This document shows, piece by piece, positions 1-52,025 of a DNA stretch of 64,000 nt (position 1 is the first letter of the stretch; each line of letters begins with the position of its first letter). The notes below the pieces were generated by a model. That model was not told the origin of the DNA. It was given only the letters and a program-made list of their open reading frames with translations, and ran no database searches. The stretch is from the NCBI GenBank assembly GCA_020891255.1, contig BQFW01000013.1, positions 806,001-870,000 of the forward strand. The letters are read 5' to 3'. The position numbers and the translations under genes were made by a program. This stretch comes from Entomortierella parvispora E1425. Its lineage: Eukaryota > Fungi > Mortierellomycota.

Positions 1-2295
1 GAGATACTGACTCTGGCAGGTAACAATGATCTTGATCTCCTCGCTCATCTTGTTTTCAGAGTACAGGTTGCACCACTTTTGGCACTCTTCATATCTATCG
101 CAGATCAAAATAATGGGTCGCCTGGATCGCCTCAGTTCTGAAAGATGGCTCTCTGAAAACGAGACTTCGCCAAGACCCCCCAGGTGCTGCTGGATCAACT
201 TGTCCCCCAAAGTCTCGAGGGTCGTGAGATCGATGAACAAAGGAATGGGATCCCCAGCCTGGTAACCGAGCCAAAGCTCATGTTCCAATGCTAAAGCGAA
301 CGCGGACTTTCCCGACTCTGCTTCACCATGGATCAACATGACGGCAGCTTTGCTCTGGAGGAAATCTTTGACGCGCTGATGAAGAGGCACAGGGCTGTCC
401 TTGTCATCTGGAAGGCGGAGACTTCTTTTGCATATCAGCTCAATCGAGTCGGAGGGCTGCTCATAGTCACGGATGCGAATACGTCGAAGGCGGTCTATCA
501 CAAGCTCCAGATCCAGTTTATCGTCCACTTTTTTCAAAAGGATGGAGGATTTCGGCAGCTCCAGATGTCTTCGCAGTGGGTATGGGAAAGAGAGGGCCGT
601 GTTCCCATCGGACTTTAGATCTTGGGCCAGATCGCCTGCCTGCTTCTTGATTTCAGCATCCTCCTGTTCATTGCTGGAAGAATACGAGGGGGCATAGGAG
701 GAGGCAGAGAGACTGGAGATGGTTGCCAGGATGGTCAGGATCCAACTCTGAACAGAGCGGTAGGTTTCCGAGGATGCCATGGCTCTGTACAGCACCCCCA
801 GGAATTTCAGAGCCTGCTCCCTGTTGTCTCTCTTCCAAGCAGAATCGACTGCGATATCGCCGAGGAGCTGTGCGATACCCCAGAGGAACAAGGGATCATC
901 TCGGCATGGGGCAGTGGAAACGAGTTCGTTGAAATCTGCTAGCCGACCCTTGGCCACAAGTCTTTCTGCGCCTCGCAGGCCAACGTACCAGGGATGGCGA
1001 CGTTTGGCACCCAAGCTGAAGAGCCCCTTCCCGTCCTCTATCAAGGTCTTTGCATCTTCCCAACCTGACGACACAAAGTCATAAAACTCGCCCACGTCCT
1101 TTTGAATCGCCTGTAGACCCTCCATAAATCCTTGAAAGTCCAACTGAACCACCGCCGAGAGCTTGACGACCCCACCCACCACACCCTCAAGGTGCCGAAG
1201 ACCGCATTGAAGGGTGGTCTCCCCATTGGGCACCCACTGCAGAGCCTGGTAGGCGTACAGGGCCTGGAACTTCAAGAACGGGTCCTCTTTGTTTCTCAAA
1301 TCTGACAACAATTCCAGAACGGGATCATGGTCACTGACCCGATCGAGGCCTTCAATCTCTAGACCTCCCACCACTTTTTCGTCCACGATCGAGTTGAGGA
1401 TCGTGGCGACGGTGACGGTCAGGTAAAACAGGTATTCGTCCAACTTTTGGTCCCGGGATCGGATGACGCGGAGGATCAGAGTGAAATCGTCAGATCTCAG
1501 GTAGCCAGGCTTGGCGTCTTGGATCAGTTGGGTCAAGCCGCGGAGGAGCTCAACATTGAGAATGGTATCCTGTTTGAACTCTTCCAAGAGTCGGTTGAGG
1601 AGGGTTCGGTATTGATCCTTGTCGAGAACAGGTCCAACAAGGACAATCTCTCGTAGAGCCTCGTCGCTCTTGGAAGGGTGGAGAATAAATTGGTTGATGA
1701 CTTCAGTCAGCAGTTTCTGAAGGTGCTCCTTCTCAAGAGGGTTCCTGTCCATTTCCTGGGTCCATTCTAACTGGGCAGGGGTGAGCGTGGGCAAAAGTGC
1801 TGGCGACGGTGCTGGTGGTGTTGATGGGGTTGGAGTAGGGGGTCGCGAAATGGAGGACGAAGACGGGGTCGCTGACGCTGCGGCGACCTCTTTAGCCTGT
1901 ACAAGGAGGTGATGATAGGAGACAAGTTGAGAGGTATCCCGAATGTACCCCACCATCTCTGGCGGTTCAATCTCTGTGTCGTTCAGAGGAACATTGTTGG
2001 GAAAGATGCCAAGGGCAATATCATGCACTTTTGCCTTCCTGTGGGGAGTAGAGGGTTTTGGTTGCGATGGGTTATTGAGTGAAGGAGATTGGGCCTTTGA
2101 CTTGCCAGCAGGAGAAGCAAGAGAAGATGAGGCTGCAGCGACGACTGTGGAGTCGCTGCTAGGATTGCTCTGTTGACCATGTGTTGCAACGGGAGGGGTA
2201 GCTCTCTTCTTGGAGAAAAGCGAAAAGATCGACTTTTTCTTGCCCACGGAAGAGTGAGGTGTCTCTGTCGCCAGGGGTGGGGTACCAACTGTCAT
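1..2295 (-). CDS. NLR-like NACHT NTPase with N-terminal helical (Arm-like) domain; runs off the window edge (3' truncated), C-terminal WD40 repeats expected outside the window
   Basis: Hand translation gives a stop-free frame of 765 codons from ATG 2295 to the window edge (absent from the ORF track because no stop is in the window). S/P-rich N-terminus, IFPNNVP, WYVGLR...PCRDDPLFLWGIAQLLGDIA helical block, Walker A GEAESGKS (~303-326), PIPLFIDL, ILICDRYEE (Walker B-like), IIVTCQSQYL. Family assignment is from motif recognition, not a search. Confidence 0.8.
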   Translation of the reverse strand, partial: MTVGTPPLATETPHSSVGKKKSIFSLFSKKRATPPVATHGQQSNPSSDSTVVAAASSSLASPAGKSKAQSPSLNNPSQPKPSTPHRKAKVHDIALGIFPNNVPLNDTEIEPPEMVGYIRDTSQLVSYHHLLVQAKEVAAASATPSSSSISRPPTPTPSTPPAPSPALLPTLTPAQLEWTQEMDRNPLEKEHLQKLLTEVINQFILHPSKSDEALREIVLVGPVLDKDQYRTLLNRLLEEFKQDTILNVELLRGLTQLIQDAKPGYLRSDDFTLILRVIRSRDQKLDEYLFYLTVTVATILNSIVDEKVVGGLEIEGLDRVSDHDPVLELLSDLRNKEDPFLKFQALYAYQALQWVPNGETTLQCGLRHLEGVVGGVVKLSAVVQLDFQGFMEGLQAIQKDVGEFYDFVSSGWEDAKTLIEDGKGLFSLGAKRRHPWYVGLRGAERLVAKGRLADFNELVSTAPCRDDPLFLWGIAQLLGDIAVDSAWKRDNREQALKFLGVLYRAMASSETYRSVQSWILTILATISSLSASSYAPSYSSSNEQEDAEIKKQAGDLAQDLKSDGNTALSFPYPLRRHLELPKSSILLKKVDDKLDLELVIDRLRRIRIRDYEQPSDSIELICKRSLRLPDDKDSPVPLHQRVKDFLQSKAAVMLIHGEAESGKSAFALALEHELWLGYQAGDPIPLFIDLTTLETLGDKLIQQHLGGLGEVSFSESHLSELRRSRRPIILICDRYEECQKWCNLYSENKMSEEIKIIVTCQSQYL

Positions 2296-3690
2296 GGTAA
2301 AGGTCTTGAGGAGCAGTTGAAAGCTTGGGGAAGGGATGACAGGGGTTTACAGCCCAAGGACAATATCTATCATCGAGAGAGGGTGGTCAGAGGCTTTGGA
2401 GAACGCCAGCGCACCCGGATCAATTGTGCAATGACATGCAATTGAGCAACCCACCTCGGCTGTCGATTTACGACAAAGGATGGCACTGCTCCTTGATGAT
2501 GGTCTCGGCACTTGTAGGTCTTGAAGATTAAGTACCTAGCGCCTGAACGAATGCCAGTCAGAGGTACGCGCCAAAGATCATTCCTTCCCTCCGTTTGGCA
2601 GGATAACAAACTTGGTTTCTGTGCTATGCGGACGTACCCCTGATATCAAAATTTGGATTGGCCCGTGGGTTGTTGTTTGTGATCAGTCGAAGACCAAAGG
2701 GATGAGATTACAATGTGGCAATGGCAATGGCAGATGTGCGAAAACGGATGAAGAGATGAGGGCGGTCGACTCGAATGGCAAAGCACGAGGAGCCATCCCA
2801 TCTCGCAGCTGTGGCTTCGAGAAGGGGGCACAAGAGCCCTTCCTCTGTATCCATCTGCTTTTTTCACCTGGGTAGCACAAGATGATGAGATGATGGTGAA
2901 GAAGAAAGTGCCTTGGTGGAGTGACCTGCAGCAGGGGTACTTTGTTGCCACAATGCAATCTACTGTTGGTGTCGACTGGGCGCAGGAGAGCGTGCGCGCG
3001 AGCAAAGAGTCCAGTCGGCACTTGTCCTTGCCTTTCTTTTCTCGTCTGTGCACAGGACAACAACTTGTGCCTTGTAGATCTTTTTTTTTTCTTCTCGTTT
3101 TCTACTCATCCATCCTTTCTTCGGCATCCCCCTTTCTTCTTTCCTTCCTTCCATTCCTCTAGCTATGTTCTTGAGAACCAGTCTTATCAATCAAAAATTG
3201 GTGACCGTGTGGACAGCTGGGAAGGTTGTTGTCCTTGATCGGAACGCGTCCAAAAGAACGCGTGCCTTTGACCTTTTCTGTAGTTGTTTGACGCACGTCG
3301 CGCAAGAATTTGAAAAAAAAAAAATCTCGATTTTGATCAATTGCTGTTTGCTTGCAAAGTTTCCCTGCTTTATGCATTTCTGGCTGTATTGTCGTATAAC
3401 TGAGGGTGGAGTTATATTCTTGCGATGGAAGCCTTGGTTACGATTGAAACAAATCCTTAAGCCACGACAGAGGGATCTGTGATCAAAGGATTTCGTCTTG
3501 GCGAGGTTGCTGACAGTCCGCCTTGAACAGCTACAGAATGGAAGAACTCAGTGAACTCAGCACAACTAAGCTGACGTCGCAACCTGCATTCAATACAACC
3601 CCCCCCCCCCCCCCAAAAAAAAATGACATAGAATAAAGGGAAAACCTACAGTCCAGATACTGATTCCGCCGGAAAACCAGTCTTAAGATG
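2126..3690. repeat. Segment duplicated in inverted orientation at ~48600-49911 (NACHT 5' end and upstream region, 3' flank of the microexon gene)
   Basis: Long matching blocks, e.g. 3410-3560 vs 48610-48760; ORF-track translations 2921..3238(+) and 48768..49205(-) share LPQCNLLLVSTGxRRACARAK. Confidence 0.9.
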
Positions 3691-3697
3691 ACCCAAC

Positions 3698-6600
3698 CTA
3701 GTTGTCGCTGGAAAATTGAGATTCAACCAGAGAGGAATATAGGAGCAAGATCATCATATTGGTCACAATCTTGCAATTACAAATGTCACGTCTTCATCTT
3801 TATGAGCAAATTAGCCAGTCGAGTTTGACGTACCTCCTAATTGAGAAGACCAGAAACATCAGGGAGAAATACAGGTAGCCATGTCAGTTCCAATGATGCA
3901 ATTGTCATGTCTTGGTCGTTATGAGCAGTTAACAAGCTTCACGTACTCGCTGATGAAGAACAGAAACGCAAGGGAGAAGTACAGGTAGCCATGTCAGTTC
4001 CAATGATGCAATTGTCATGTCTTGGTCGTTATGAGCAGTTAACAAGCTTCACGTACTCGCTGATGAAGAACAGAAACGCAAGGGAGAAGTACAGGTAGCC
4101 ACGTTAGTTCCAATGTTGCAGTTGTTTGTCTTCGTCGTTATGAGCAATTAGTAGGCTTGTCTTACAGGCTGATTGAGAAGAACAGAAACGCCAGGGATAA
4201 TTACAGGTGGCCATGTTAGTTCAATCTTGCAAGTGCTATGTCTTCGTCGTTATGAGCAATTAGTAGGCTTGTCTTACAGGCTGATTGAGAGGAACAGAAA
4301 CACCAGGGAGAATTACAGGTGGCCATGTTAGTTCAATCTTGCAAGTGCTATGTCTTCGTCATTACGAGAGCTTGACGTACCGGCTGATTGAGAAGAGCAG
4401 AAACACCAGGGTGAAATACAGGTGGCCATGTTAGTTCCAATGTTGTAATTTTCATGTCTTCGTCGTTACGGGCAATTAGTAGGCTTGTCTTACAGGCTGA
4501 TTGAGAAGAACAGAAACGCCAAGGAGAAATACAGGGGGCCATGTTAGTTCCAATCTTGCAATTGTCATGTCTTCGTCGTTATGAGCAATTAGTAGGCTTG
4601 TCTTATAATACAGTACATGCTGATTGAGAAGAACAGAAACAGCAGGGAGAAATACAGGTAGCCAGCCATTTTAGTTCCAATGTTGCAATTGTCATGTCTT
4701 CTTTGTTACGGGCAATCAGTAGGCCTGTCTTACAGGCTGATTGAGAAGAACAGAAATGCCAAGGAGAAATACAGATGGCCATGTTAGTTCCAATGTTGCA
4801 GTTGTCATGTCCTCGTCGTTATGAGCAATTAGCAAGCTCGACGTACCCCCTAATTTAGAAAAGAAACACCAAGGAGAAACACAGGTTGCCATGTTAGCTC
4901 TAACACTGCAATTGCCATGTCTTCCTCGTTACGAACAATGAGCAAACTTGACGCACTTCCTAATTGAGAAGAACATAAACGCCAGGGAGAAATACAGGTT
5001 GCCATGTGAGTTCTAATGTTGCAATTGTCATGTCTTCGTCATTGCGAGCAATTGGTAGGCTTGTCTTACGAGCTGATTGAGAAGAACATAAACACCAAGG
5101 AGAAATACAGATGGCCGTGTTAGTTCCAATCTTGCAATTGTCATGTCATCGTCGTTATGAGCAATTAGTAGGCCTCTCTTACGTGCTGATTGAGAAGAAC
5201 AGAAACAACAAGGAGAAATACATGTAACCATGTTAGTTCCAATCTTGCGATTGTCATGTCTTCGTCGTTACGAGCAATGAGCAAACTTGACGTACTCCCT
5301 AATTGAGAAAAACAGAAACACCAGGGAGAAATACAGGTGGCCACGTTAGTTCCAATGTTGTAATTTTCATGTCTTCGTCATTACAAGCAATTAGTAGGCT
5401 TGTCTTACGAGCTGATTGAGAAGAACAGAAACACCAAGGAGAAATACAGATGGCTATGTTAGTTCCAATGTTGCAGTTGTCATGTCTTCGTCGTTATGAG
5501 CAATTAGTAGGCTTGTCTTACAGGCTGATTGAGAAGAACAGAAACGTCAGCGAGAAATACAGGTTGCCATGTGAGTTCCAACGTTGCAATTGTCATATCT
5601 TCGTCGTTATGAGCAATTAGTAAGCATGTCTTACACCCTGATTAAGAAGAACGGAAACACCAGGTATAAGTACAGGTGGCCATGTGAGTTCCAACGTTGC
5701 AGTTGTTATGTCTTCGTCGTTATGAGCAATTAGTAGTCCTGTCTTACGTGCTGATTGAGAAGAACAGAAACACCAAGGAGACATACATGTGACCATGTTA
5801 GTTTTAATGTTGCAATTGTCATGTCTTCGTCGTTACGAGCAACGAGCAAGCTAGACGTACTTGCTGATTAAGAAGAGCAGAAACGCCAAGGAGAAATACA
5901 GGTTGCCATGTTAGTTCCAATGATGCAACTGTCATGTCTTCGTCGTTAAGAGCAATTAGTAGGCTTATCTTACAAACTGATTGATAAAAACAGAAACGCC
6001 AGGGAGAAATGCAGATGGCCATGTTAGTTCCAGTGTTGCAATTGTCATGTCTTCGTCGGTATGAGCAATTAGAAAACTTGACGCACCCCCTAATTTAGAA
6101 TTTAGAAAATAAACAACAAGGAGAAACACAAGTTGCCATGTTAGTTCCAATCTTCCAATTGTCATGTCTTCCTCGCTACGAACAGTGAGCAAACTTGACG
6201 TACTCCCTAATTGAGAAAAACAGAAAGACCAGGGAGAAGTACAGGTTGCCATATGAGTTCCAATATTGCAATTGTCATGTCTTTGTTGTCACGAGCAATT
6301 AGCAAGCTAGACGTACTCGCTGATTAAGAAGAACAGAAACACCAGGAGAGGTACGGGTGGCTATGTTAGTTCCAGTATTGTAATTGCCGTGTCTTCATAG
6401 TTATGAGCAATCAGTAGGCTTGTCTTACAGCCTGATTGAGAAGAACAGAAACACCAGGGAGAAGTACAGGTGGCCATGTTAGTTCCAATCTTTCAATTGT
6501 TGTCTTCGTCGTTTTGAGCTATTATCTAACTTGACATACACGCTAGTTGAGAAGAACAGAAACACCAGGGAGAAATACAGGTGGCCATGTTAGTTCCAAT

Positions 6601-7127
6601 GTTGCAATTGTCGTGTCTTCGTCGTAATGAGGAATTAACAAGCTAGACGTACTCCCTAATTGACAAGAACAGAAACACCAGGGAGAAATACAGGTAGCCA
6701 TGTTAGTTCCAATCTTGCAGTTGACGTGTCTTCGTCATGATGAGCAGTTAACAAGCTTCACGTACTTGCTGATTAAGAAGACCAGAGGCGCCAAGTAGAA
6801 ATTCAGATGGCTATGTTAGTTCCAATGTTGCAATTGTTATGTCTTCGTCGCTATGAGCAATTAGTAGGCTTGTCTTACATCCTGATTGAGAAGAACAGAA
6901 ACACCAGGGAGAAATACATGTAACCACGTTAATTCCAAAATCTTGCCATTGCTTTGTTTTTGTCGGTACGAATAATATAGGACGGGTTGTCTTAATCGAC
7001 AGCAGGTGTTCATCAAGAGGCGCCTGTAGTTTTGCGATTTTCTTTTTTTTTTCTATTCAACTTACGTTGGAGCAGCCATGGTGACACCTAGAAAGGCAAC
7101 AAGGACAAGAAGGAATTTGATTTTCAT
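3698..7127 (-). CDS. Small secreted peptide gene built from 28 three-nucleotide microexons (copy 1, predicted 51 aa)
   Basis: Exon 1 7127-7066 (MKIKFLLVLVAFLGVTMAAP+AC, then GTAAGT). Microexons flanked by AG/GT, in gene order (lowest coordinate): GAT6879 CAA6766 GGA6653 CGT6540 GCT6429 CGA6317 GGA6204 GGG6087 TTT5974 CAA5861 CAC5748 GGT5635 CCT5522 CTC5409 GGA5296 CAC5183 CTC5070 GAA4957 GGG4847 CCT4734 CAT4617 CCT4494 CCG4381 CCT4278 CCT4166 CGA4057 CGA3947 GAG3834. Last coding exon 3707-3698 (TTTTCCAG|C GAC AAC TAG). The joined frame has no internal stop. Confidence 0.8.
3780..6950 (-). repeat. Tandem array of ~113-bp units (28 copies), each unit = one intron + one 3-nt exon
   Basis: Minus-strand consensus GTAAGACAAGCCTACTAATTGCTCATAACGACGAAGACATGACAATTGCAACATTGGAACTAACATGGCCACCTGTATTTCTCCCTGGTGTTTCTGTTCTTCTCAATCAG-NNN; most periods are 110-113 bp, range about 103-123. 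Confidence 0.97.
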
Positions 7128-7835
7128 TGTAAGGTGAGTGGAGCTGGATTGTGTGTAAAGTAGTTCGAACAAGGACAGGATGGAAGGAAAGGTGTGGATA
7201 AAGCGATGGTCGTCGCACAAAGTAAACGGTGTATAAAAGAAAATCAGGGACCAAGATCAAAACTGGCATTGTTTTTCAGGAGATGATTAAAGGGGCACCA
7301 CCCTCCTTGCCCTTACTTTCCCGGAGGGAGCACTCAAGGTCAGATTACAGTCGTGCACTTTTACTCAGTTGCGAATGTCAAATCGCGGCAGCAAGTTTTT
7401 TTTCCCTTCAGAAAATGGTTGACGTCAACTGCTGGCTGTGGAGAGCATGAAGAAGGCACCTGATTCAGTGGAGATGACTGGCGTGTTTCTGTGAGTCGTC
7501 ATTACTTCTTGCTAAGTTCTGACCCTCATCCCCTCAAACCAAACGTGCCCCCTGCAACACATCCTCAAAAAAAAAAAAAAAAAAAAAAAATGGCGTTACC
7601 TGTCGCCAATGATGCTGAGAGTGGTCCTCCTCCTCCACTTCCATTTCCTTTCTCTGCTCCCGCTCATGCTCCCCCTCAGTGGTTGTCATCGCTGACTCGT
7701 ACTTCTGTCCTTTTATCTTTAACAGTGTCTGAAAAGATGGCCCAAGTTGTTCATAAATTATAGCATGATAGGCTTTGCTTTGTGAATTCTACTTTTGAGG
7801 ATGCTAGTTGCAACTAAAGGACAGAGGTGAGGTAG

Positions 7836-8165
7836 ATCAGCTCCTGGTTACAGCCTCACACGCCTCGAGTTTCCTGAAAAAAACGAGGGAACAGTGGCTA
7901 CGTGTTTTGATAATGGCACAGGACAGGACGATGATGACAACAGACAAGGGCACTTCTCTCTTTTTCTCATCTTTTGCGCTGCACCCTTGACAGCTTGCCA
8001 ATAAAAGAGGTTCGCCATCATTCTTCTTGGATCTTTTCGGCCTCTTTCCTTCCCTTTGGTCTTCAACAGTTGCCCTCCAATGAACTAGTCCACCTCACAA
8101 CCCTCTTGTCTTCGGATCGTCGAAAAGGTCAACGGTTTCCAGAATTCACCACATCCTGACACTGC
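7836..8165 (+). repeat. Left arm of a diverged long inverted repeat (partner 9740-10013)
   Basis: 8000-8125 aligns to the reverse complement of 9790-9915 (ORF-track peptides HHSSWIFSASFLxFGLQQLPSNExVHLTT occur on opposite strands); weaker similarity extends to ~7836/10013. Confidence 0.8.
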
Positions 8166-8199
8166 GTCAGGACTTTACACCAAGATGTTACGCCACCTG

Positions 8200-9737
8200 C
8201 GCTTCGTGCCCAGAGTGCTGTCATGTTGCTCCGGCTTTTGACTCTGGCCAATGGTTGCTATCTTTCGAATACGAACTGGCTTGGACAACCATGAATGAAA
8301 ACCTGGATGAACCATTTTTCTTTATTTGCAGCATTCCATCCTATAACGTACTGTCAGGCCTCTCCTCTTCCAAGAATTCTGCTGTTATTCGCGAGCTAAT
8401 TGAAATACCGCCTTGTCCATCAACAGGACAAACGGTCCCTTCAGCGTATCGATCACTGGGACCTTGGGCATCTTCAGCGCTTTCTCCGCCTCATCGTCGT
8501 CGTCATCTTCACCATAGTTGATCATCTCCAGTTCGTCCACGTCCTCCTGCCGCAATCCCATGCCCTTCAGCCCCTTGGCAATTCGACCATGATCCCTCTC
8601 CACTGTAATCTTCTCGACAGATGGGGTTGCGGATGACACAGACGATGAAGAGCTGCTAATCCGTGCCATCTCGCGAACCTCTTCTCTCTTCCGCTCCTGG
8701 ATCTGTCCGAAATAGGTCTGCAGGGCAACCGTCTCCTGCTCGAGTTCTGCCCATTAAGACTGGTCCACATTATCGCGCACAGAGTATCAAGTCCACAGAG
8801 ACCCGGAGCTCTTCTTCCGTCTTGTAGTTGATCCGAGTTCTTGCGTAACCTGTCCTCAAGAATGTCAGGATACTCTCGATCCATTCCAACAGGTCGTGGA
8901 AGAGTCCATCGTCTTGCTTGTGCACCGAGTGTACAAACTTGTAAAAGCTTGGAAGATGTTTCCTGACCAAGTTCAAGTATAAGGATGCGGTCTAGGGCTT
9001 TCCACTGCGGCCATCTATGACAAAATAAAACGACATAGAGCTTTAGTATCGAATTCCTTGATTGACAGACCGTGAAAACACCTCTGTTCTCATTCTTACC
9101 GTCATTCACATCCACCTGCTCTACAATCTTGATCAGCTCATCCACAAAGTCCTTCACATCCATCAAGCTGTCTGCAACATTCGCTGACTTGTAGACCTGG
9201 ACCAACGGCTGGTAAAAGATCGAGATCAACTCTTTGAAGATCTCTCCCGTCACTCCCTGGAAGACTAAGCCCATCATTCTTTCCTTGTCTCGGATTCGAA
9301 GATGAGTCACCAAAAGCTGTTGCAACTGACGAATCGGGTTCAACTGCTTGGCCCGAGCAGCCTTCTTCTTGCTCGAGGCGGTAGAAGAATGGAATCGACG
9401 TGTCGAACTCTCCTCTGTAGAGGCGATGGATGAGGGCTCGCTGTCACTGTCGCTGTCGCTAAGGTCGACATCCGCCGATTGGTGCCTGGCCAACTTTTCC
9501 AGCAAATCCTTTTCCAACTGTTGCTGGGCATCAAAAACACGTTTGATCTGGGCAGGATTGAGGGTAGGTTGGATAGCATCTGACTTGAGGACATCCATGA
9601 CAAGACCGAGTTGGGTGATATCGTATGGTCCTATAAGCACAGCAACAAATAAGATACAGTCAGAAATCAACCATCAATATTTTCTCCTGCAAGGCGCTAC
9701 CTTTTCGAAAGCACTTACTGTCTTTGGGGATAGTCTT
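8200..9737 (-). pseudogene. 3' fragment duplicate of the PX-domain gene (copy of ~15311-16861), introns and 3' flank retained
   Basis: Highly similar to the 3' exons of 15507-18915 but lacks the 5' half; CAA>TAA nonsense at ~8755 and a small frameshifting deletion at ~8785. Confidence 0.9.
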
Positions 9738-15506: not shown

Positions 15507-18500
15507 TTATTCGCGAGCTAATTGAAATACCGCCTTGTCCATCAACAGGACAAACGGTCCCTTCAGCGTATCGATCACTGGGACCTTGGGCATCTTCAGC
15601 GCTTTCTCCGCCTCATCGTCGTCGTCATCATCACTATAGTTGATCATCTCCAGTTCGTCCACGTCCTCCTGCTGTAATCCCATGCCCTTCAGCTCCTTGG
15701 CAATTCGATCATGATCTCTCTCCACAGTAATCTTCTCAACAGATGGGGTTGCGGATGACACAGACGACGACGAGCTGCTAATCCGTGCCATTTCGCGAAC
15801 TTCTTCTCTCTTCCGCTCCTTGATCTGCCCGAAATAGGTCTGCAGGGCAACCGTCTCCTGCTCAAGTTCTGCCCATTGAGACTGGTCCACATTATTGCGC
15901 ACAAAGGACTTCAAGTCCACGGAGACCCGGAGTTCTTCTTCTGTCTTGTAGTTGATCCGAGTTCTTGCGTAACCGGTCCTTAAGAATGTCAGGATACTCT
16001 CGATCCATTCCAACAGGTCGTGGAAGAGTCCATCGTCCTGTTTGTGCACCGAGTGTACAAACCTGTAAAAGCTTGGGAGATGCTTCCTGACCAAGTTCAA
16101 GTATAAGGATGCGGTCGAGGGCTTTCCACTGCGGCCATCTATGACAAAATAAAACGACATAGAGCTTTAGTATCGAATTCCTTGATTGACAGACCGTGAA
16201 AACACCTCTGTTCTCATTCTTACCGTCATTCACATCCACCTGCTCTACAATCTTGATCAGCTCATCCACAAAGTCCTTCACGTCCATCAAGCTGTCTGCA
16301 ACATTCGCTGACTTGTAGACCTGGACCAACGGCTGGTAAAAGATCGAGATCAACTCTTTGAAGATCTCTCCCGTCACTCCCTGGAAGACTAAGCCCATCA
16401 TTCTTTCCTTGTCCCGGATTCGAAGATGAGTCACCAAAAGCTGTTGCAACTGGCGAATCAGGTTCAACTGCTTGGCCCGAGCAGCCTTCTTCTTGCTTGA
16501 GGCGGAAGAAGAATGGAATCGACGTGTCGAACCCTCCTCTGTAGAGGCGATGGATGAAGTCTCGCTGTCACTGTCGCTGTCGCTAAGGTCGACATCCATG
16601 GATTGGTGCCTGGCCAACTTTTCCAGCAAGTCCTTTTCCAGCTGTTGCTGGGCATCAAAAACACGTTTGATCTGGGCAGGGTTGAGGGTAGGCTGGATAG
16701 CATCTGACTTGAGGACATCCATGACAAGACCGAGTTGGGTGATATCGTATGGTCCTATAAGCACAGCAACAAATAAGATACAGTCAGAAATCAACCATCA
16801 ATATTTTCTCCTGCAAGGCGCGACTTTTTCCAAAAGCACGTACTGTCTTCGGGGATAATCTGAGAAACAACTTCCTTGGACGCATAGACATAGTTTCGAA
16901 TCTTGTCGCAAAGAGCGGGATCGTTAATGGATGTCTCCAGAACCACAATGTCCTTCTTGTACTCTGTGATTTCTTCCTGCAGGTTCACTGAGATGATGCG
17001 TTGCATCAAGCTTCGGCTTCCAAAGGGCTGCGCCAAGAAGAGATCCATCATGCCTTTCATCATGGCCATGGGATTCGACACCTTGAGGATACCCCACATC
17101 GTCCTGTAGGGCATCAGCATGTTGGTCCGCTTGAGCTGCGTAAAGTTCAAGGCTGCATCATCCGAGGCCGTAAAGGCATGGTAAAGGGTTGACGCGAAAT
17201 TCATGCATCCCCACTCAAAAACTGTCTGGTAGAGTGGGGGAAGATCCTGCACATTTTCGTACTGCCTGAAAGCGTCGAACAAGCGCGACACACCACCAGG
17301 CTGAAGCAAGTCCAGCTTGACCTGCTTCATATGACCCTCAAGTTCCTGCACCTTGGCGGCAACCTCTCGGTCAAACTTCTCCTGCTGCTCTGCTCGATGT
17401 TGGTCCAGTGCGGCACGGATTTGAATATCCTTAAGCTCATCTGCAGTCAGTGTGACAGGATCCTTGGTCAAGAACTGAACGAAAATGGTCGATGTCACAA
17501 TCTCAGGAGCGACCCTGGCTAGATTGTGAAGGTAGCCTCTCAGACTGATGCGATCCTTTTCATGAGCGGCCTTGGCGCCGGCAGATCCAGACTTGACCTC
17601 TGATTTCGCAGGAGGCAATGGGAACTCGTAACGAGGATACTCCTCTCTCAACTAAGCAAAGGAGATTCAAGAAGTGTTAGGTTTTTTTCCAGAGGGACAA
17701 CGGCGTCGAAAATGATGATAACAGGTTAGATTCCTTCGTGCTTACCGAGGCATAGAGCCTGCGGAACTGACCGTGACGTCGAGCCACGATGGATTCCCTT
17801 CCGTCGGGCAGCTTGCTGCTGACCAAAAACTCCTAAAATAGGCAGAGACGAGAGCATGAGTCCTGACTGTAGAGTTACAGTTGAGGCGCAAAAGGCTGTG
17901 GCGACCATTGATTGACCTCCAATTGGGGCTACAAGTACAAGTTGGTCATGTCTGCCAAGATGCAAGCGTCACTGACCCTCAATCTCAGAAGTGAAATGGC
18001 TGGTCTTTGCCAAAGAAGAGAAAGAGAGAGCGAGCAAGCGATAAAGAAAAGAAAGGAAAAGAGAACAAACAAAAAAAAAGAAAAAAAATCGCCAGGAACA
18101 ACAAGACACCGAGCATTTTCAAATCCATCCATAAAAAACAAACGACGAAGCGAAACAAGCGCAGACGTAAAAAACACACCAGCATTCGATGACTATGACG
18201 ATGATCTTACCGCATGTTCGTGTTCGCGGATATGGCGTCGGATCCACACACTCTTGACGCCTGCCACGTTGATGCGCGCTCCATAGATGACCGTCGAGGG
18301 TCCCGAGACAGAAGGGAGCTCTGCTGGGGCGGGCTGCTGAAGGTGAAACTGCCCAAAGCTGTCCTCAAGCGTCGTGGCATGATCCCCCGGGGATGCAAGG
18401 TCCTTCTTCTCCTGTTCACGCTGCTCCACAGTCTTGACGGCCATCGAATACATCATGACCATGGTGCGTTCCGCCTTCGCCTTCATGCGTCGTCGACGGA

Positions 18501-46726: not shown

Positions 46727-47141
46727 CCAAGCGTGGAGTAAAGTGATCTTTCCATTCTCCTAAACAGCAAACACAATAAGCGCATGCCGTCAGCTATTGT
46801 TCATGGCGATGGGTGCCTCACACAAGGAAACCACAAGTCCGTCGATATCTCCCTCGAATCCAATCTAGGAGAGCTGCTTTCAGGCCAGAAATTTCCTGGC
46901 CCCTTCAGCAGAACGTAAGACCAATCGATGCTGGAGGGAAATAAGGACGGGCACCATCTAGTCACACCGGCCGTCTTCCCCGCTCCCTTCCTCCTCGCCC
47001 CAAAATCGAGTTCTTCATGCTCTCCACAGCCAGAAGTGGACGTCAACCATTCTCTGACAAAAGAGTAAAAAGTTTGCTTTGTGCAGCGACCGTCGCTTGT
47101 TCAAACTTCTTCACATACAATCCAGCTTCACCCACCTTACA

Positions 47142-48598
47142 ATGAAAATCGAATTCCTTCTTGTCCTTGTTGCCTTTCTAGGTGTCACCATTGCTACTCC
47201 AGCGTAAGTTGAATAGAGTAGAAAAGCCTAAGAAGACTACAGGCGCCTATTGATGAACAGCGTCTGTCGATTAAGACAACCTGTCCTATTGTCAGTATCG
47301 ACGAAAATGATGGCAAGATTGGAACTAACATGGTTAAGTGTATTTCTCCTTGGCCTTTCTGTTCTTCTCGATCAGCCCGTAAGGCAAACCAGTCCATTGT
47401 TGGTGATGACGACTACATGACGAGTGCAACACTGGAACTAACATGGCCACCTGTACTTCCCCCCGGGTTTTCTGTTCTTCTTAATCAGCCTGTAAGGCAA
47501 ACCGACTAATTGCTCATAACGACGAAGACATGGCAATCGCAAGATTGGAACTAATATGGCCACCTGTATTTATCTCTGGCGTTTCTGTTCTTAACCAGCC
47601 TGTAAGACAAGCCTATGGCTCATAACGACGACATGTCAGCTGTAAGATTAGAACTAACATGGCCACCTGCGCTTCTCTCCGACGTGTCGGTTCTTCTCAA
47701 TCAGCGGGTACGTCAAGTTTGCTAATTGCTCATAACGACGAAAGACATTGTAAGATTAGATAATAACATCGTCACCTGTATCTCTGACATTTCTGTTCTT
47801 CTCAATCAGACCGTAAGACAAGCTTACAACTTCTTCATAATGACGGCATGACAACTGTAAGATTAGAACTAACATGGCCACCTGTATCTATCCCTGGCGT
47901 TTCTGTTCTTCTCAATCAGCGCGCGTCAAGTTTGCTAATTGCTCATAACGACGACATGACAACTGCAACATTGGAAATAACATGGCCACCTGTATTTCTT
48001 CCTGCCACGTTTCTGTTCTTATCAATCAGCCTGTAAGACAAACCTGCTGATTGCTCGATGACGACATGGAAATTGCAAGATTTTAACTAACATTGCCACC
48101 TGCATTTCTCTCCGGCGTTTTTGTTCTTCTCAATCTGCACGTAAGTCAAATGTGCTAATTGCTCATAACGACGAAAGACGTTGTAAGATTAGAACTAACA
48201 TGGCCACCTGTATTTATCCCTGGCATTTCTGTTCTTCTCAATCAGCGAGTACGTCAAGTTTGCTAATTGCTCATAACGACGAAGACATGGCAATTGCAAG
48301 ATTGAAACTAACATGGCCACTTGTATTCCTCCCTGGCATTTCTGTTCTTCTCAATCAGCCCGTAAGGCGAACCAGTCCATTGTTGGTGAGGACGACGACA
48401 TGATAATTGCAAGATTGGAACTAACATCGCCACCTATATGTCTCCCTGGTGTTTCTGTTTTTCTCAATCAGCCAGTAAGGCACACCAATCCATTGTTGGT
48501 CAGGATTACTATATGACAATTGCAAGATTGGAACTAACATGATGACCTTATTCCTCTCTTCCTCTCTGGCTCGATATCAATTTTTCAGCAGAAAATAG
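47142..48598 (+). CDS. Small secreted peptide microexon gene, copy 2 (11 units, 2 with damaged splice sites)
   Basis: Exon 1 47142-47203 (MKIEFLLVLVAFLGVTIATP+GC|GTAAGT). Triplets CCC47376 CCT47489 CCT47599 CGG47705 ACC47810 [CGC47920, donor GC] CCT48030 [CAC48138, acceptor CTG] CGA48246 CCC48359 CCA48472. Last exon 48589-48598 C AGA AAA TAG. Predicted MKIEFLLVLVAFLGVTIATPAPLLGPLDPHRK when the two damaged exons are skipped. Confidence 0.65.
47290..48545 (+). repeat. Tandem array (~100-115 bp, 11 units) homologous to 3780-6950, inverted
   Basis: Same GAACTAACATGGCCACCTGTATT...TTCTGTTCTTCTCAATCAG-NNN-GT unit. Confidence 0.95.
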
Positions 48599-48756
48599 GT
48601 TGGATCGCTCTCAGAGTTCACTGAGTTCTCCATTTTGTATCTGTTCAATGCGGCTTGTCAGCAACTTCCCCAAGACGAAATCCTTTGATCACAGCTCCCT
48701 CTATCGTGGCTTAAGGATTTGTTTCAATCGTAAGCAAGGCTTCCATCGCAAGAATA

Positions 48757-48802
48757 TAACGACACCCTCAGTTATACGACAGTATAACTGAGGGTGTCGT
48801 TA
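48757..48802. other. Perfect 21-bp inverted repeat with 4-nt loop
   Basis: TAACGACACCCTCAGTTATAC gaca GTATAACTGAGGGTGTCGTTA. Confidence 0.95.
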
Positions 48803-49732
48803 CAACCAGAGATACATAAAGCAGGGAAACTTTGCAAGCGAACAACAATTGATCAAAATCGAGGTTTTTTTTCCCAGATTCTTGTGGAACGTGCGTCAAG
48901 ACACGCGTTCTTTTGGACGCGCTCCGATCAAGGACGACAACCCTCTCAGCTGTCCACACGGTCGCCAATTTTTGATCGATGAGATTGATTCTCAAGGACA
49001 TAGCTAGAGGGATGGAAGGAAGGGTTGAAGCAAGGGGGATATCGAAGAAAGGAAGGATGAGTAGAAAACGAGAAAAAAGAAAAAAAAAGGATCTATGAGG
49101 CACGAGAAAAGAAAGGCAAAGACAAGTGCCATATGGAGTCTTTGCTCGCGCGCATGCTCTCCTTTGCCCAGTCGACACCAACAGCAGATTGCATTGTGGC
49201 AACAAAGGGCCAACAGTCTGGACCCCTGCTGCAAGTCACTCAACCAAGGCACTTTCTTCTTCACCATCATGGAAGGGCTATTGTGCCCCCTTCTCGAAGC
49301 CAGAGAGATACACATCTGCCAATGCCATTGCCATTGCCATCTCATCCCTTCGGTGTTCGATTGATCACAAACAACAACCCATGGGCCAATCCAATTTTGA
49401 TGTCAGGGGTAAACGTCCACACAGCACAGAGAGCAAGTTTGTTATCCTGCCACACGGAGGAATTAAGCGGAGGAATGGAATGATCTTTGGCACGCGCCTC
49501 CTACTGGCATTCGTTCAGGCGCTAGACACTAAATCTCTAAGACCTATAAGTGCCGAGACCTTCATCAAAGAGCAGTGCCATCCTTTGTCGTAAATCGACA
49601 GCCGAGGTCGGTTGCTGCGCTGGCGTTCTCTAAAGTATCTGATCACTCTCTCAATGATAGATATTGCCCTTGGGCTGTAAAGCCCCGTCATCCCTTCCCC
49701 AAGTCTTCAACCGCCTCTCGAAGACTTTTGCC

Positions 49733-50395: not shown

Positions 50396-51864
50396 GAGCA
50401 GATCACATCAGGGTCAAGGTCGAGAAAGGAGAGGGACGGAAAGACCTGCAATCAAGCAAGCAAGCAAGTTGGAAGGAGACACGCGAAAGCCCCTTTTCAT
50501 ATCCCACCCACCGTCCCTGTTCATCTTGCTCCCCTTCTCATAATCACGCTCGACTCTCCTTTACTCTCATGTTTACCTCAACATTCGACCTCAACAGCCA
50601 GCCGTCCTTTGTCTTTGCCTCATCTACAAGACCGATGCCATGCATGCATACCCGCCCTTGATCAAGGACTTTCTCCAAAGCCCCTTCTACCCATCCAGTC
50701 AGGTGTACTCCGCCAGTGTTGCTCTTACCTGGCATCCAGTCCGTGCTTCATTCTGCCTTTGTGCATCGTGCAGGCTGATGGACTGGTTAGAAAATGTAAG
50801 TCGACGACGCAAATCAGTTTATTAATCAAAACTCGTTCATCCATGTCCTTCAACATTAGCATGAACTCGACAGCAGGAAATCTGTTTGATCTTCAGTAGT
50901 CAGGAGGAGCTCAACCTTGCCACGCGAACATATGGATGGTCTGGACAAACATCGATAGGCAGCTGGTAAGGTTGGTGAAGAAGGATTCTGCATGAAGGAC
51001 TTTGTGAGTTTCATTCAGTGCCCGACATTGCTTTCATCGGATAGCAGCTGCTTGACCTGGACATGGAGAGAGATACACCTCACTCTAAAATGATCTGTTC
51101 TCTGTTGTTCATACCGACCTTTCGCCTGGGGCTGACTGCGACTAGTAAGACTGGAGCTTGGTCATGATCAGTAGCAATCCTCTCGAGGACAAGGTCAAGT
51201 TTTATACACCAGTCATGGATATGAAGTATACGTTGTAAGCGTGTTGGACTAAAGCGGCGAGCATTAAGCGGCTCGCTCTTTATTCTAACTCGGTCTTTTA
51301 GGATCACCTCTAGTGAACAATCAGGACCTGGATATCATGGGAGTGTCACTGCCATATTCTTGGACCATAGGGATATCGGGCCACCAGAGACATGAAAGGC
51401 GAGTGTAACTGTTCTCGTCTGTCGTGGGATCCAGGACACACACACGTCCGAGTTTTAGGCTTGGTCCATTGGTTGTGTCATCGATCCTTCTCAGGATCTT
51501 GGTGTTAAGCCAGCCGTTTGCCATTTCGTTAATCTTTTGGTTCTCTGGACTTCAAACGATCGAAAGGCTGATACTTTATCACTCTACATGAATGCCGCAG
51601 CCAAGACTTTCTTGATTTACTGGGGTTTGCAGAAGCAGTGATAGTGATGAGGACTCATAATCGCTTTCAGCGAGGCTGGTTCCTGGCAGATACCTGATTT
51701 CAACCAAGAAAGTGAAGGGATGAATAAAGACGAGGCGTCGGTTAACTTAACCCTGCCGCGTCATCTGAAAGTCGCCCTGTGGCAAGGAAGATATTGGTTG
51801 ATTGCTCAGAAGAAACAAAGCGCCTAGGTTTCTCCTTCAAAAAACTTGCTCTTTGGCATTTTGC

Positions 51865-52025
51865 TTAGCCATTACAGAGGCTAAGCTAGATTGATTAGCC
51901 ATTACAGAGGCTAAGCTAGATTGATTAGCCATTACAGAGGCTAAGCTAGATTGATTAGCCATTACAGAGGCTAAGCTATATTTTTTAGCCATTACTTAGA
52001 GGCTAAGCTAGATTGATTAGCCATT
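51865..52025 (+). repeat. 30-bp minisatellite, ~5.3 copies, each with an internal TTAGCC/GGCTAA palindrome
   Basis: Unit TTAGCCATTACAGAGGCTAAGCTAGATTGA; three perfect copies, two variant copies and a partial. Confidence 0.95.

Follow-up and report, generated by a model that had tools for sequence, protein, structure and literature searches.

We report a 3.4-kb tandem repeat in a 64,000-nucleotide (nt) stretch of the Entomortierella parvispora E1425 genome (contig BQFW01000013.1, 806,001–870,000; hereafter the window, whose positions serve as coordinates throughout). Based on its predicted splicing, the repeat can be read on the minus strand as 29 consecutive introns with single codons between them, which together would encode a small secreted peptide (gene A). 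On balance we favour the view, with a confidence only a little above even, that gene A is, or until recently was, a genuine chain of micro-exons. According to the proposed scheme, the transcription unit would open with a signal-peptide exon, and its body would consist of tandem units of about 110 nt, each a complete short fungal intron. By intron definition, the spliceosome would take out the units one after another, and what separates an acceptor from the following donor, three bases in each case, would be retained in the message as one-codon exons. Joining in phase 2 would then give a pre-peptide of 51 amino acids (aa) with an acidic mature part of 31 aa, destined for secretion. The array would lengthen through tandem duplication of intron-plus-codon units, the codons of which would then diverge fast, while the skipping of a unit would cost one residue and could not create a stop. 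Here we infer the inclusion of the triplets in the mRNA, as well as the translation, secretion and activity of the peptide.

The predicted elements of gene A are as follows.

7127..7066, minus strand: exon 1, 62 nt; ATG at 7127 and a 20-codon open reading frame (ORF) resembling a signal peptide; ends in CCAAC before GTAAGT, phase 2
7065..6882, minus strand: intron 1, 184 nt; donor GTAAGT; 5′ part unique, 3′ half unit-like with TTAAC and CAG
6881..3837, minus strand: array; 28 spacers of three bases each, the putative one-codon exons, alternating with 27 unit introns (100–120 nt)
4101..3870, minus strand: perfect tandem duplicate within the array; 110-nt period (107-nt intron plus CGA), with a 122-nt exact run at offset 110 (3870–3991 = 3980–4101)
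3833..3708, minus strand: last intron, 126 nt; donor GTACGT, acceptor TTTTCCAG; degenerate branch site CCAAT (CTAAC in the paralogue B described below)
3707..3698, minus strand: last exon, 10 nt, CGACAACTAG; TAG in frame for phase 2 only

The general anatomy had been proposed in a sequence-only reading of the region, and it holds on the minus strand: the signal-peptide exon with its GTAAGT donor, the phase-2 introns, the array and the stop exon were all recovered, and the joined frame yields the same 51-aa product. There are 28 YAG-NNN-GT junctions spaced by about 113 nt, with the first bases of the triplets running from 6881 to 3836, and the spacers comprise 16 distinct triplets. The unit donors are GTAAGA, GTACGT, GTGCGT, GTATGT and, in one case, GTACTG. 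A CTAAC branch site was found in 20 of the 27 unit introns, with the branch A 45–52 nt before the 3′ end (most often about 48 nt from the acceptor, much as had been described); the others carry CTCAC, CTCAT, CTGAC or CTAAA. The signals correspond to U2-type introns: GT and AG are present in 28/28 units and G at +5 in 27/28, and the T and A of the branch site are invariant. According to Tandem Repeats Finder (TRF), the array has a period of 113 nt with 22–28 copies and 79% matches; the mean pairwise identity of the units is 80%. By inspection, exon 1 encodes a signal peptide with an MKIK n-region, an 11-residue hydrophobic core and T/A at positions −3/−1. The joined coding sequence of 156 nt would give the 51-aa product as MKIKFLLVLVAFLGVTMAAP followed by the 31-residue acidic part, and 84 of the 94 coding bases beyond exon 1 would, by this prediction, sit in 3-nt units. 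A scan for ORFs inside the array on both strands revealed none of note.

The perfect duplicate at 3870–4101 is apparently the latest growth step of the array. Its 110-nt period indicates that the array grows by units of an intron plus three bases, so that each new unit starts with the triplet of its parent. In unit 21 (4594–4619), a 10-nt insertion lies at the donor, and the ancestral GTAAGA now reads ATAAGA; a new weak donor, GTACTG, stands exactly 3 bases past the acceptor, and a second GT (GTATTA) at 8 nt would shift the frame.

To describe the constraint within the array, the 28 junction regions were aligned, and parsimony changes per column were counted on trees built without the scored block. 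The three spacer columns N1, N2 and N3 showed 8, 10 and 8 changes, whereas the 113 non-junction columns averaged 2.35; the spacers change about four times as fast as other columns, which bears out the earlier remark that NNN is the variable spot of the unit. Only 3 of the 113 other columns reached 8 or more changes, while the AG and GT flanking NNN showed 0, and all 112 internal AG/GT bases are intact in gene A. The pairwise diversity of N2 (0.74) and N3 (0.73) is near saturation, with all four bases present. When the chain is read in phase with exon 1, N2 and N3 become the first and second bases of a codon, and N1, whose diversity is lower, falls at the wobble position.

The splice signals behaved in the opposite way to the spacers. 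The essential positions (+1, +2, +5, the T and A of the branch site, −2 and −1) accumulated 1 change in total, as against 19 at the tolerant positions interleaved with them (−3, +3, +4, +6 and the n and y of the branch site); position −3 is always C or T, and position +3 is always A or G. The probability that no more than 1 of 20 random changes falls in the essential set is about 2 × 10⁻⁵, the split into essential and tolerant positions being the textbook consensus (GTRNGT / YTNAY / YAG) but applied post hoc, with the data already seen. In a neutral minisatellite, substitutions would fall regardless of function, and this is not the distribution found here either for the splice positions or for NNN. 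The pyrimidine tract was said to be free of AG; three units do have an AG 5 nt past the branch A, but none of the 28 units of gene A has one from 8 nt past the branch A to the acceptor. In the 39 post-branch zones of A and B taken together, about 23 AGs would be expected from base composition and 1 was observed, in intron 1 of B. Judging from these patterns, the anatomy of the array is non-random in the manner of functional introns, and the intron signals of the units appear complete and selectively maintained.

Several features of the joined frame that had been offered as evidence for coding did not withstand examination. The absence of an internal stop is uninformative, since 0 of 20000 shuffles of the triplet order produced one, and the hydrophobic moment behind the supposed amphipathic helix was not significant (P 0.17). 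Nor is the codon usage typical of the window: third-position G+C in the chain is 96%, whereas ten long ORFs of the window have 57% and exon 1 has 40%. This value comes from the two subfamilies of units (TAG-G.. with GTACGT and CAG-C.. with GTAAGA) and not from codon choice.

A second copy of the gene was found in the window, together with two conserved regions flanking gene A.

47142..48598, plus strand: paralogue B; same exon 1 (47142–47203), 11 units, last exon CAGAAAATAG (48589–48598) with TAG at the homologous place
7403..7455, minus strand: conserved upstream block, 94% identical to 47011–47057 of B; the surrounding flank does not align
3340..3560, minus strand: conserved downstream region of about 220 nt, 91% identical to 48614–48859 against about 80% for the wider flank; RNA contigs match 3433–3515

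Paralogue B is inverted relative to gene A, and both are carried by an inverted segmental duplication (approximately 2125–8992 versus 49902–45212), the ordinary flanks of which are about 80–82% identical. This arrangement sets A and B head to head, about 40 kb apart; a fragment of a PX/DUF3818 gene also lies within the duplication (8199–8992 versus 45973–45212). Outside the A/B family, no copies of the array units were found elsewhere in the 64-kb window. An unrelated 30-nt tandem repeat (5.4 copies, 93% matches) is located at 51861–52025.

Against a background of about 18–20% difference, the first 48 bases of the signal-peptide ORF differ between A and B at 1 of 48 positions (2%; 98% identity), for which the probability of no more than one difference at an 18% background is about 0.001. 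The 13 bases past the first donor are 100% identical. The signal peptide is also kept in a third copy, known from an RNA contig, and B shares TAGGTTGG at the stop, as does a third family member represented in the RNA. The putative mature-coding pieces, by comparison, differ by 21–100%, above the background: 3 of the last 14 nt of exon 1, all 3 bases of triplet 1 and, in the last exon, 4 of the 7 coding bases. Secreted-peptide families usually look like this, with a hypervariable mature part beside signal and regulatory parts that are conserved. Paralogue B has blemishes: a donor is lost at 47920, the acceptor at 48138 reads CTG, and an AG occurs 12 nt past the branch point of intron 1.

The conserved upstream block is likely, from its position and conservation, to be a promoter element. 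It holds a palindrome, TGACGTCA at 7420–7427 in A and GGACGTCA at 47039–47046 in B, about 290 nt and 95 nt upstream of the ATG, respectively, and it is the sole alignable piece of the promoters. TGACGTCA may be a cAMP-response-element (CRE)-type motif, which suggests a bZIP or stress-type regulation; such regulation could be the reason for silence in standard culture. The conserved downstream region is probably the 3′ untranslated region (3′UTR). An ORF common to both copies of it shows 6 non-synonymous and 2 synonymous differences, and thus it does not appear to be coding. Directly past its stop, copy A carries about 125 inserted nt (3570–3697), including 15 C and then 9 A on the plus strand (3600–3624); the insertion is missing from B and may have altered the 3′UTR or polyadenylation. 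The downstream region of B contains a perfect 17-bp hairpin with a 4-nt loop (48761–48798), one arm of which is missing in A (an 18-nt alignment gap).

In order to find transcripts, public sequencing runs were searched. A query with the Sey1 exon matched 12 public runs, and the contigs of four of these were compared with 3400–9399; a search of the runs with the array itself as the query found none. One run, here X2, carried the label 'DNA?' yet behaves as RNA: there is no intergenic coverage, and Illumina adapter is present at a fragment end. A contig of depth 255 from this run skips 9015–9099 and differs from the window there at 27 + 6 positions, and these match one for one the differences that set apart a 96%-identical direct duplicate at 15522–16624, whose genomic sequence retains the 85-nt intron. 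A contig lacking the intron and bearing the exact differences of the duplicate means that X2 is spliced RNA of the assembled strain. The 85-nt intron verified in this way has the donor GTAAGA, as do half of the units, and the branch site ACTAAA. The duplicated segment (8400–9500 versus 15522–16624) is part of a PX/DUF3818 gene that includes this intron; only the copy at 15.5 kb is represented in X2 (depth 255, spliced), and the copy beside gene A appears silent.

Transcripts of the family were found in the same run. An X2 contig of depth 30 aligns to 7087–7126 in exon 1, with adapter past 7126, and to 3433–3465, the array being absent; transcription in at least one family member therefore begins near the ATG, and its array is lost. 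Low-depth contigs (3–5) of other family members retain units, and one such contig terminates in ...AAAAATAGGTTGG, which adds a third variant of the stop exon. The loose ends of the RNA contigs match nothing in the window, which implies further family members, and the genome holds at least three or four copies. One unspliced X2 contig, aligned to 3437–3515, 5409–5525 and 4495–4570, comes from another family member with seemingly only two unit-like introns, and the boundaries of its pieces suggest about 9 bases, rather than 3, between acceptor and donor. If this is true, the spacer of about 9 bases could represent a copy with a precise intron loss, which would argue for unit-wise splicing. In run X10, from a divergent strain, the array was matched only at the end of the pyrimidine tract plus AG-NNN-GTAAGAC, in matches about 100 nt apart, which hints, weakly, that strains share the junction better than any other part.

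A number of observations weigh against a micro-exon chain. No X2 contig at least 99% alike was found in 3400–7400, so that the transcript of copy A itself was not seen, although a hole in coverage proves nothing. The depth-30 contig is equally compatible with a direct join of exon 1 to the last exon. The 51-aa product shares no words with any of 5.8 billion protein cluster representatives, and exact look-ups of the A product and of four B isoforms in protein collections failed, as did one for the unspliced 70-aa ORF over exon 1. These negatives say little, because products this short are rarely held in such collections and were perhaps never called. No orthologue from another species was found; pattern scans of metagenomes gave 0 and then 23 matches, none of which was array-like by blastn. 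In gene A, the donor GTACTG at 4616 is weak and the last intron has no good branch site, and B has two dead junctions, the early AG and CCN triplets of low diversity. The rapid change of the triplets could also reflect neutral evolution beside introns under constraint. Finally, 28 consecutive 3-nt exons are without known precedent.

The same evidence bears on the competing explanations. The whole array may be removed as non-coding sequence, in one step or with nearly all triplets skipped, so that the triplets never reach protein and the message encodes a signal peptide with three residues, or nothing useful. We consider this unlikely while giving it real weight, as the depth-30 contig links exon-1-like to 3′UTR-like sequence, three-base exons cannot be exon-defined, and the chain peptide has an automatically open frame and no significant helical amphipathy. 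Bulk removal, however, gives no reason for the intact 112/112 AG/GT bases, the branch-site T and A and the AG-free tract in units differing by about 20%, and under intron definition the skipping of a 3.4-kb intron full of strong internal sites would be improbable. Moreover, exon 1 joined straight to the last exon adds just 3 residues beyond the signal peptide; a conserved signal peptide with such a cargo makes little sense, and it would thus need the triplets as its cargo. It is likewise unlikely, in our opinion perhaps slightly more so, that the locus is dead or dying, that is, that an intron of a secreted-protein gene expanded as a minisatellite in which unequal exchange homogenised the splice-like signals of the founder, with A unexpressed. 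This would agree with the lack of an exact RNA contig on A, with the ongoing minisatellite dynamics seen in the perfect recent duplicate and with the disabling changes in B. But homogenisation affects all columns alike: it cannot yield frozen essential positions beside varying interleaved ones, and it does not explain three saturated columns between AG and GT. In addition, conservation of the promoter block, the signal peptide, the first donor and the stop exceeds the background of the duplicated segment, and family members are transcribed.

Two further explanations seem to us very improbable. Gene A might be a host gene for stable or processed small RNAs borne by its introns, like mammalian SNORD115/116, with the tiny exons as neutral spacers; conserved introns, fast exons and kept splice sites are the reported pattern of snoRNA host genes with tandem intron-exon units (PMC11608373). 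Structured or snoRNA-like introns were nevertheless rejected as a candidate on the results for Rfam, consensus pairing and folding energy: an Rfam search up to E = 1 gave no match, 37 units yielded a consensus structure with 0 pairs, and single units folded no better than shuffles (z from −0.9 to +1.9). The unit consensus is also without C/D boxes, and a host gene of this kind would leave the conserved signal-peptide ORF and the in-frame stop unexplained. Equally improbable is that exon 1 is spliced into the conserved 3′ region, to a second exon there (TGTCAG|CAAC near 3509 would be one such site), giving a basic secreted protein of 45–105 aa. The frame is open in both paralogues from a shared acceptor-like site, the region is better conserved than the flank, and an RNA contig connects exon 1 with 3433–3465; a coding exon there was rejected, however, on the substitution pattern (6 non-synonymous versus 2 synonymous differences), the C-termini are unrelated because of an 18-nt indel with a stop in B, and the constraint inside the array would go unexplained.

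Tandem introns with one-codon exons had not been described before in the literature searched; single 3-nt exons in fungi and micro-exon genes in schistosomes are already known. Long reads of Coprinopsis cinerea revealed 27 exons of 3 nt in 26 genes (10.1101/2024.05.10.593147). Isolated exons of 1–3 nt in fungi and plants resemble gene A in the anatomy of the AG-NNN-GT junction, but they sit singly in ordinary genes, whereas in gene A 28 in series would make up the whole mature peptide. Gene A can also be compared with ratchet-point recursive splicing in Drosophila and vertebrates, where the acceptor likewise abuts a donor and removal is stepwise. Ratchet points, however, leave zero bases, while gene A would leave three per step, and its units are full-size short introns rather than fragments of one long intron. 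In the micro-exon genes (MEGs) of schistosomes, a run of very short symmetric exons comes after one for the signal peptide, and skipping them keeps the frame; the product is secreted and fast-evolving. Gene A would, by prediction, share with them the signal-peptide exon and the run of symmetric short exons. MEG exons are typically 6–36 nt long, compared with 3 nt in gene A, and one MEG intron is not a tandem copy of the next. Gene A belongs to a fungus and is unrelated to MEGs in sequence. SNHG14, the locus of SNORD115/116, contains, as gene A does, dozens of tandem intron-exon units in which the splice sites are kept and exon conservation is poor; its introns, however, carry box C/D snoRNAs and its exons are non-coding, whereas in gene A no RNA motif or fold was found and a signal-peptide ORF frames the array. 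Fungal introner-like elements are, like the gene A units, many near-identical spliceosomal introns from one founder; they are dispersed in unrelated genes, in contrast to the strictly tandem units of gene A, which are confined to one family.

Tentatively, and as a possibility that goes well beyond the micro-exon chain itself, the codons may have diversified under positive selection while the introns stayed alike, and, since whatever triplets are retained stay in frame and contain no stop, variable skipping of units may allow a single locus to make a graded or combinatorial range of peptides. If the micro-exon chain is real, gene A would be the most extreme split gene described and a natural test of the limit to which 3′ and 5′ splice sites can be packed, 28 times running. 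Gene finders and splice-aware aligners would then be blind to a class of small secreted-peptide genes in fungi, and the family would represent a new route of peptide growth and diversification, by one residue per duplicated intron.

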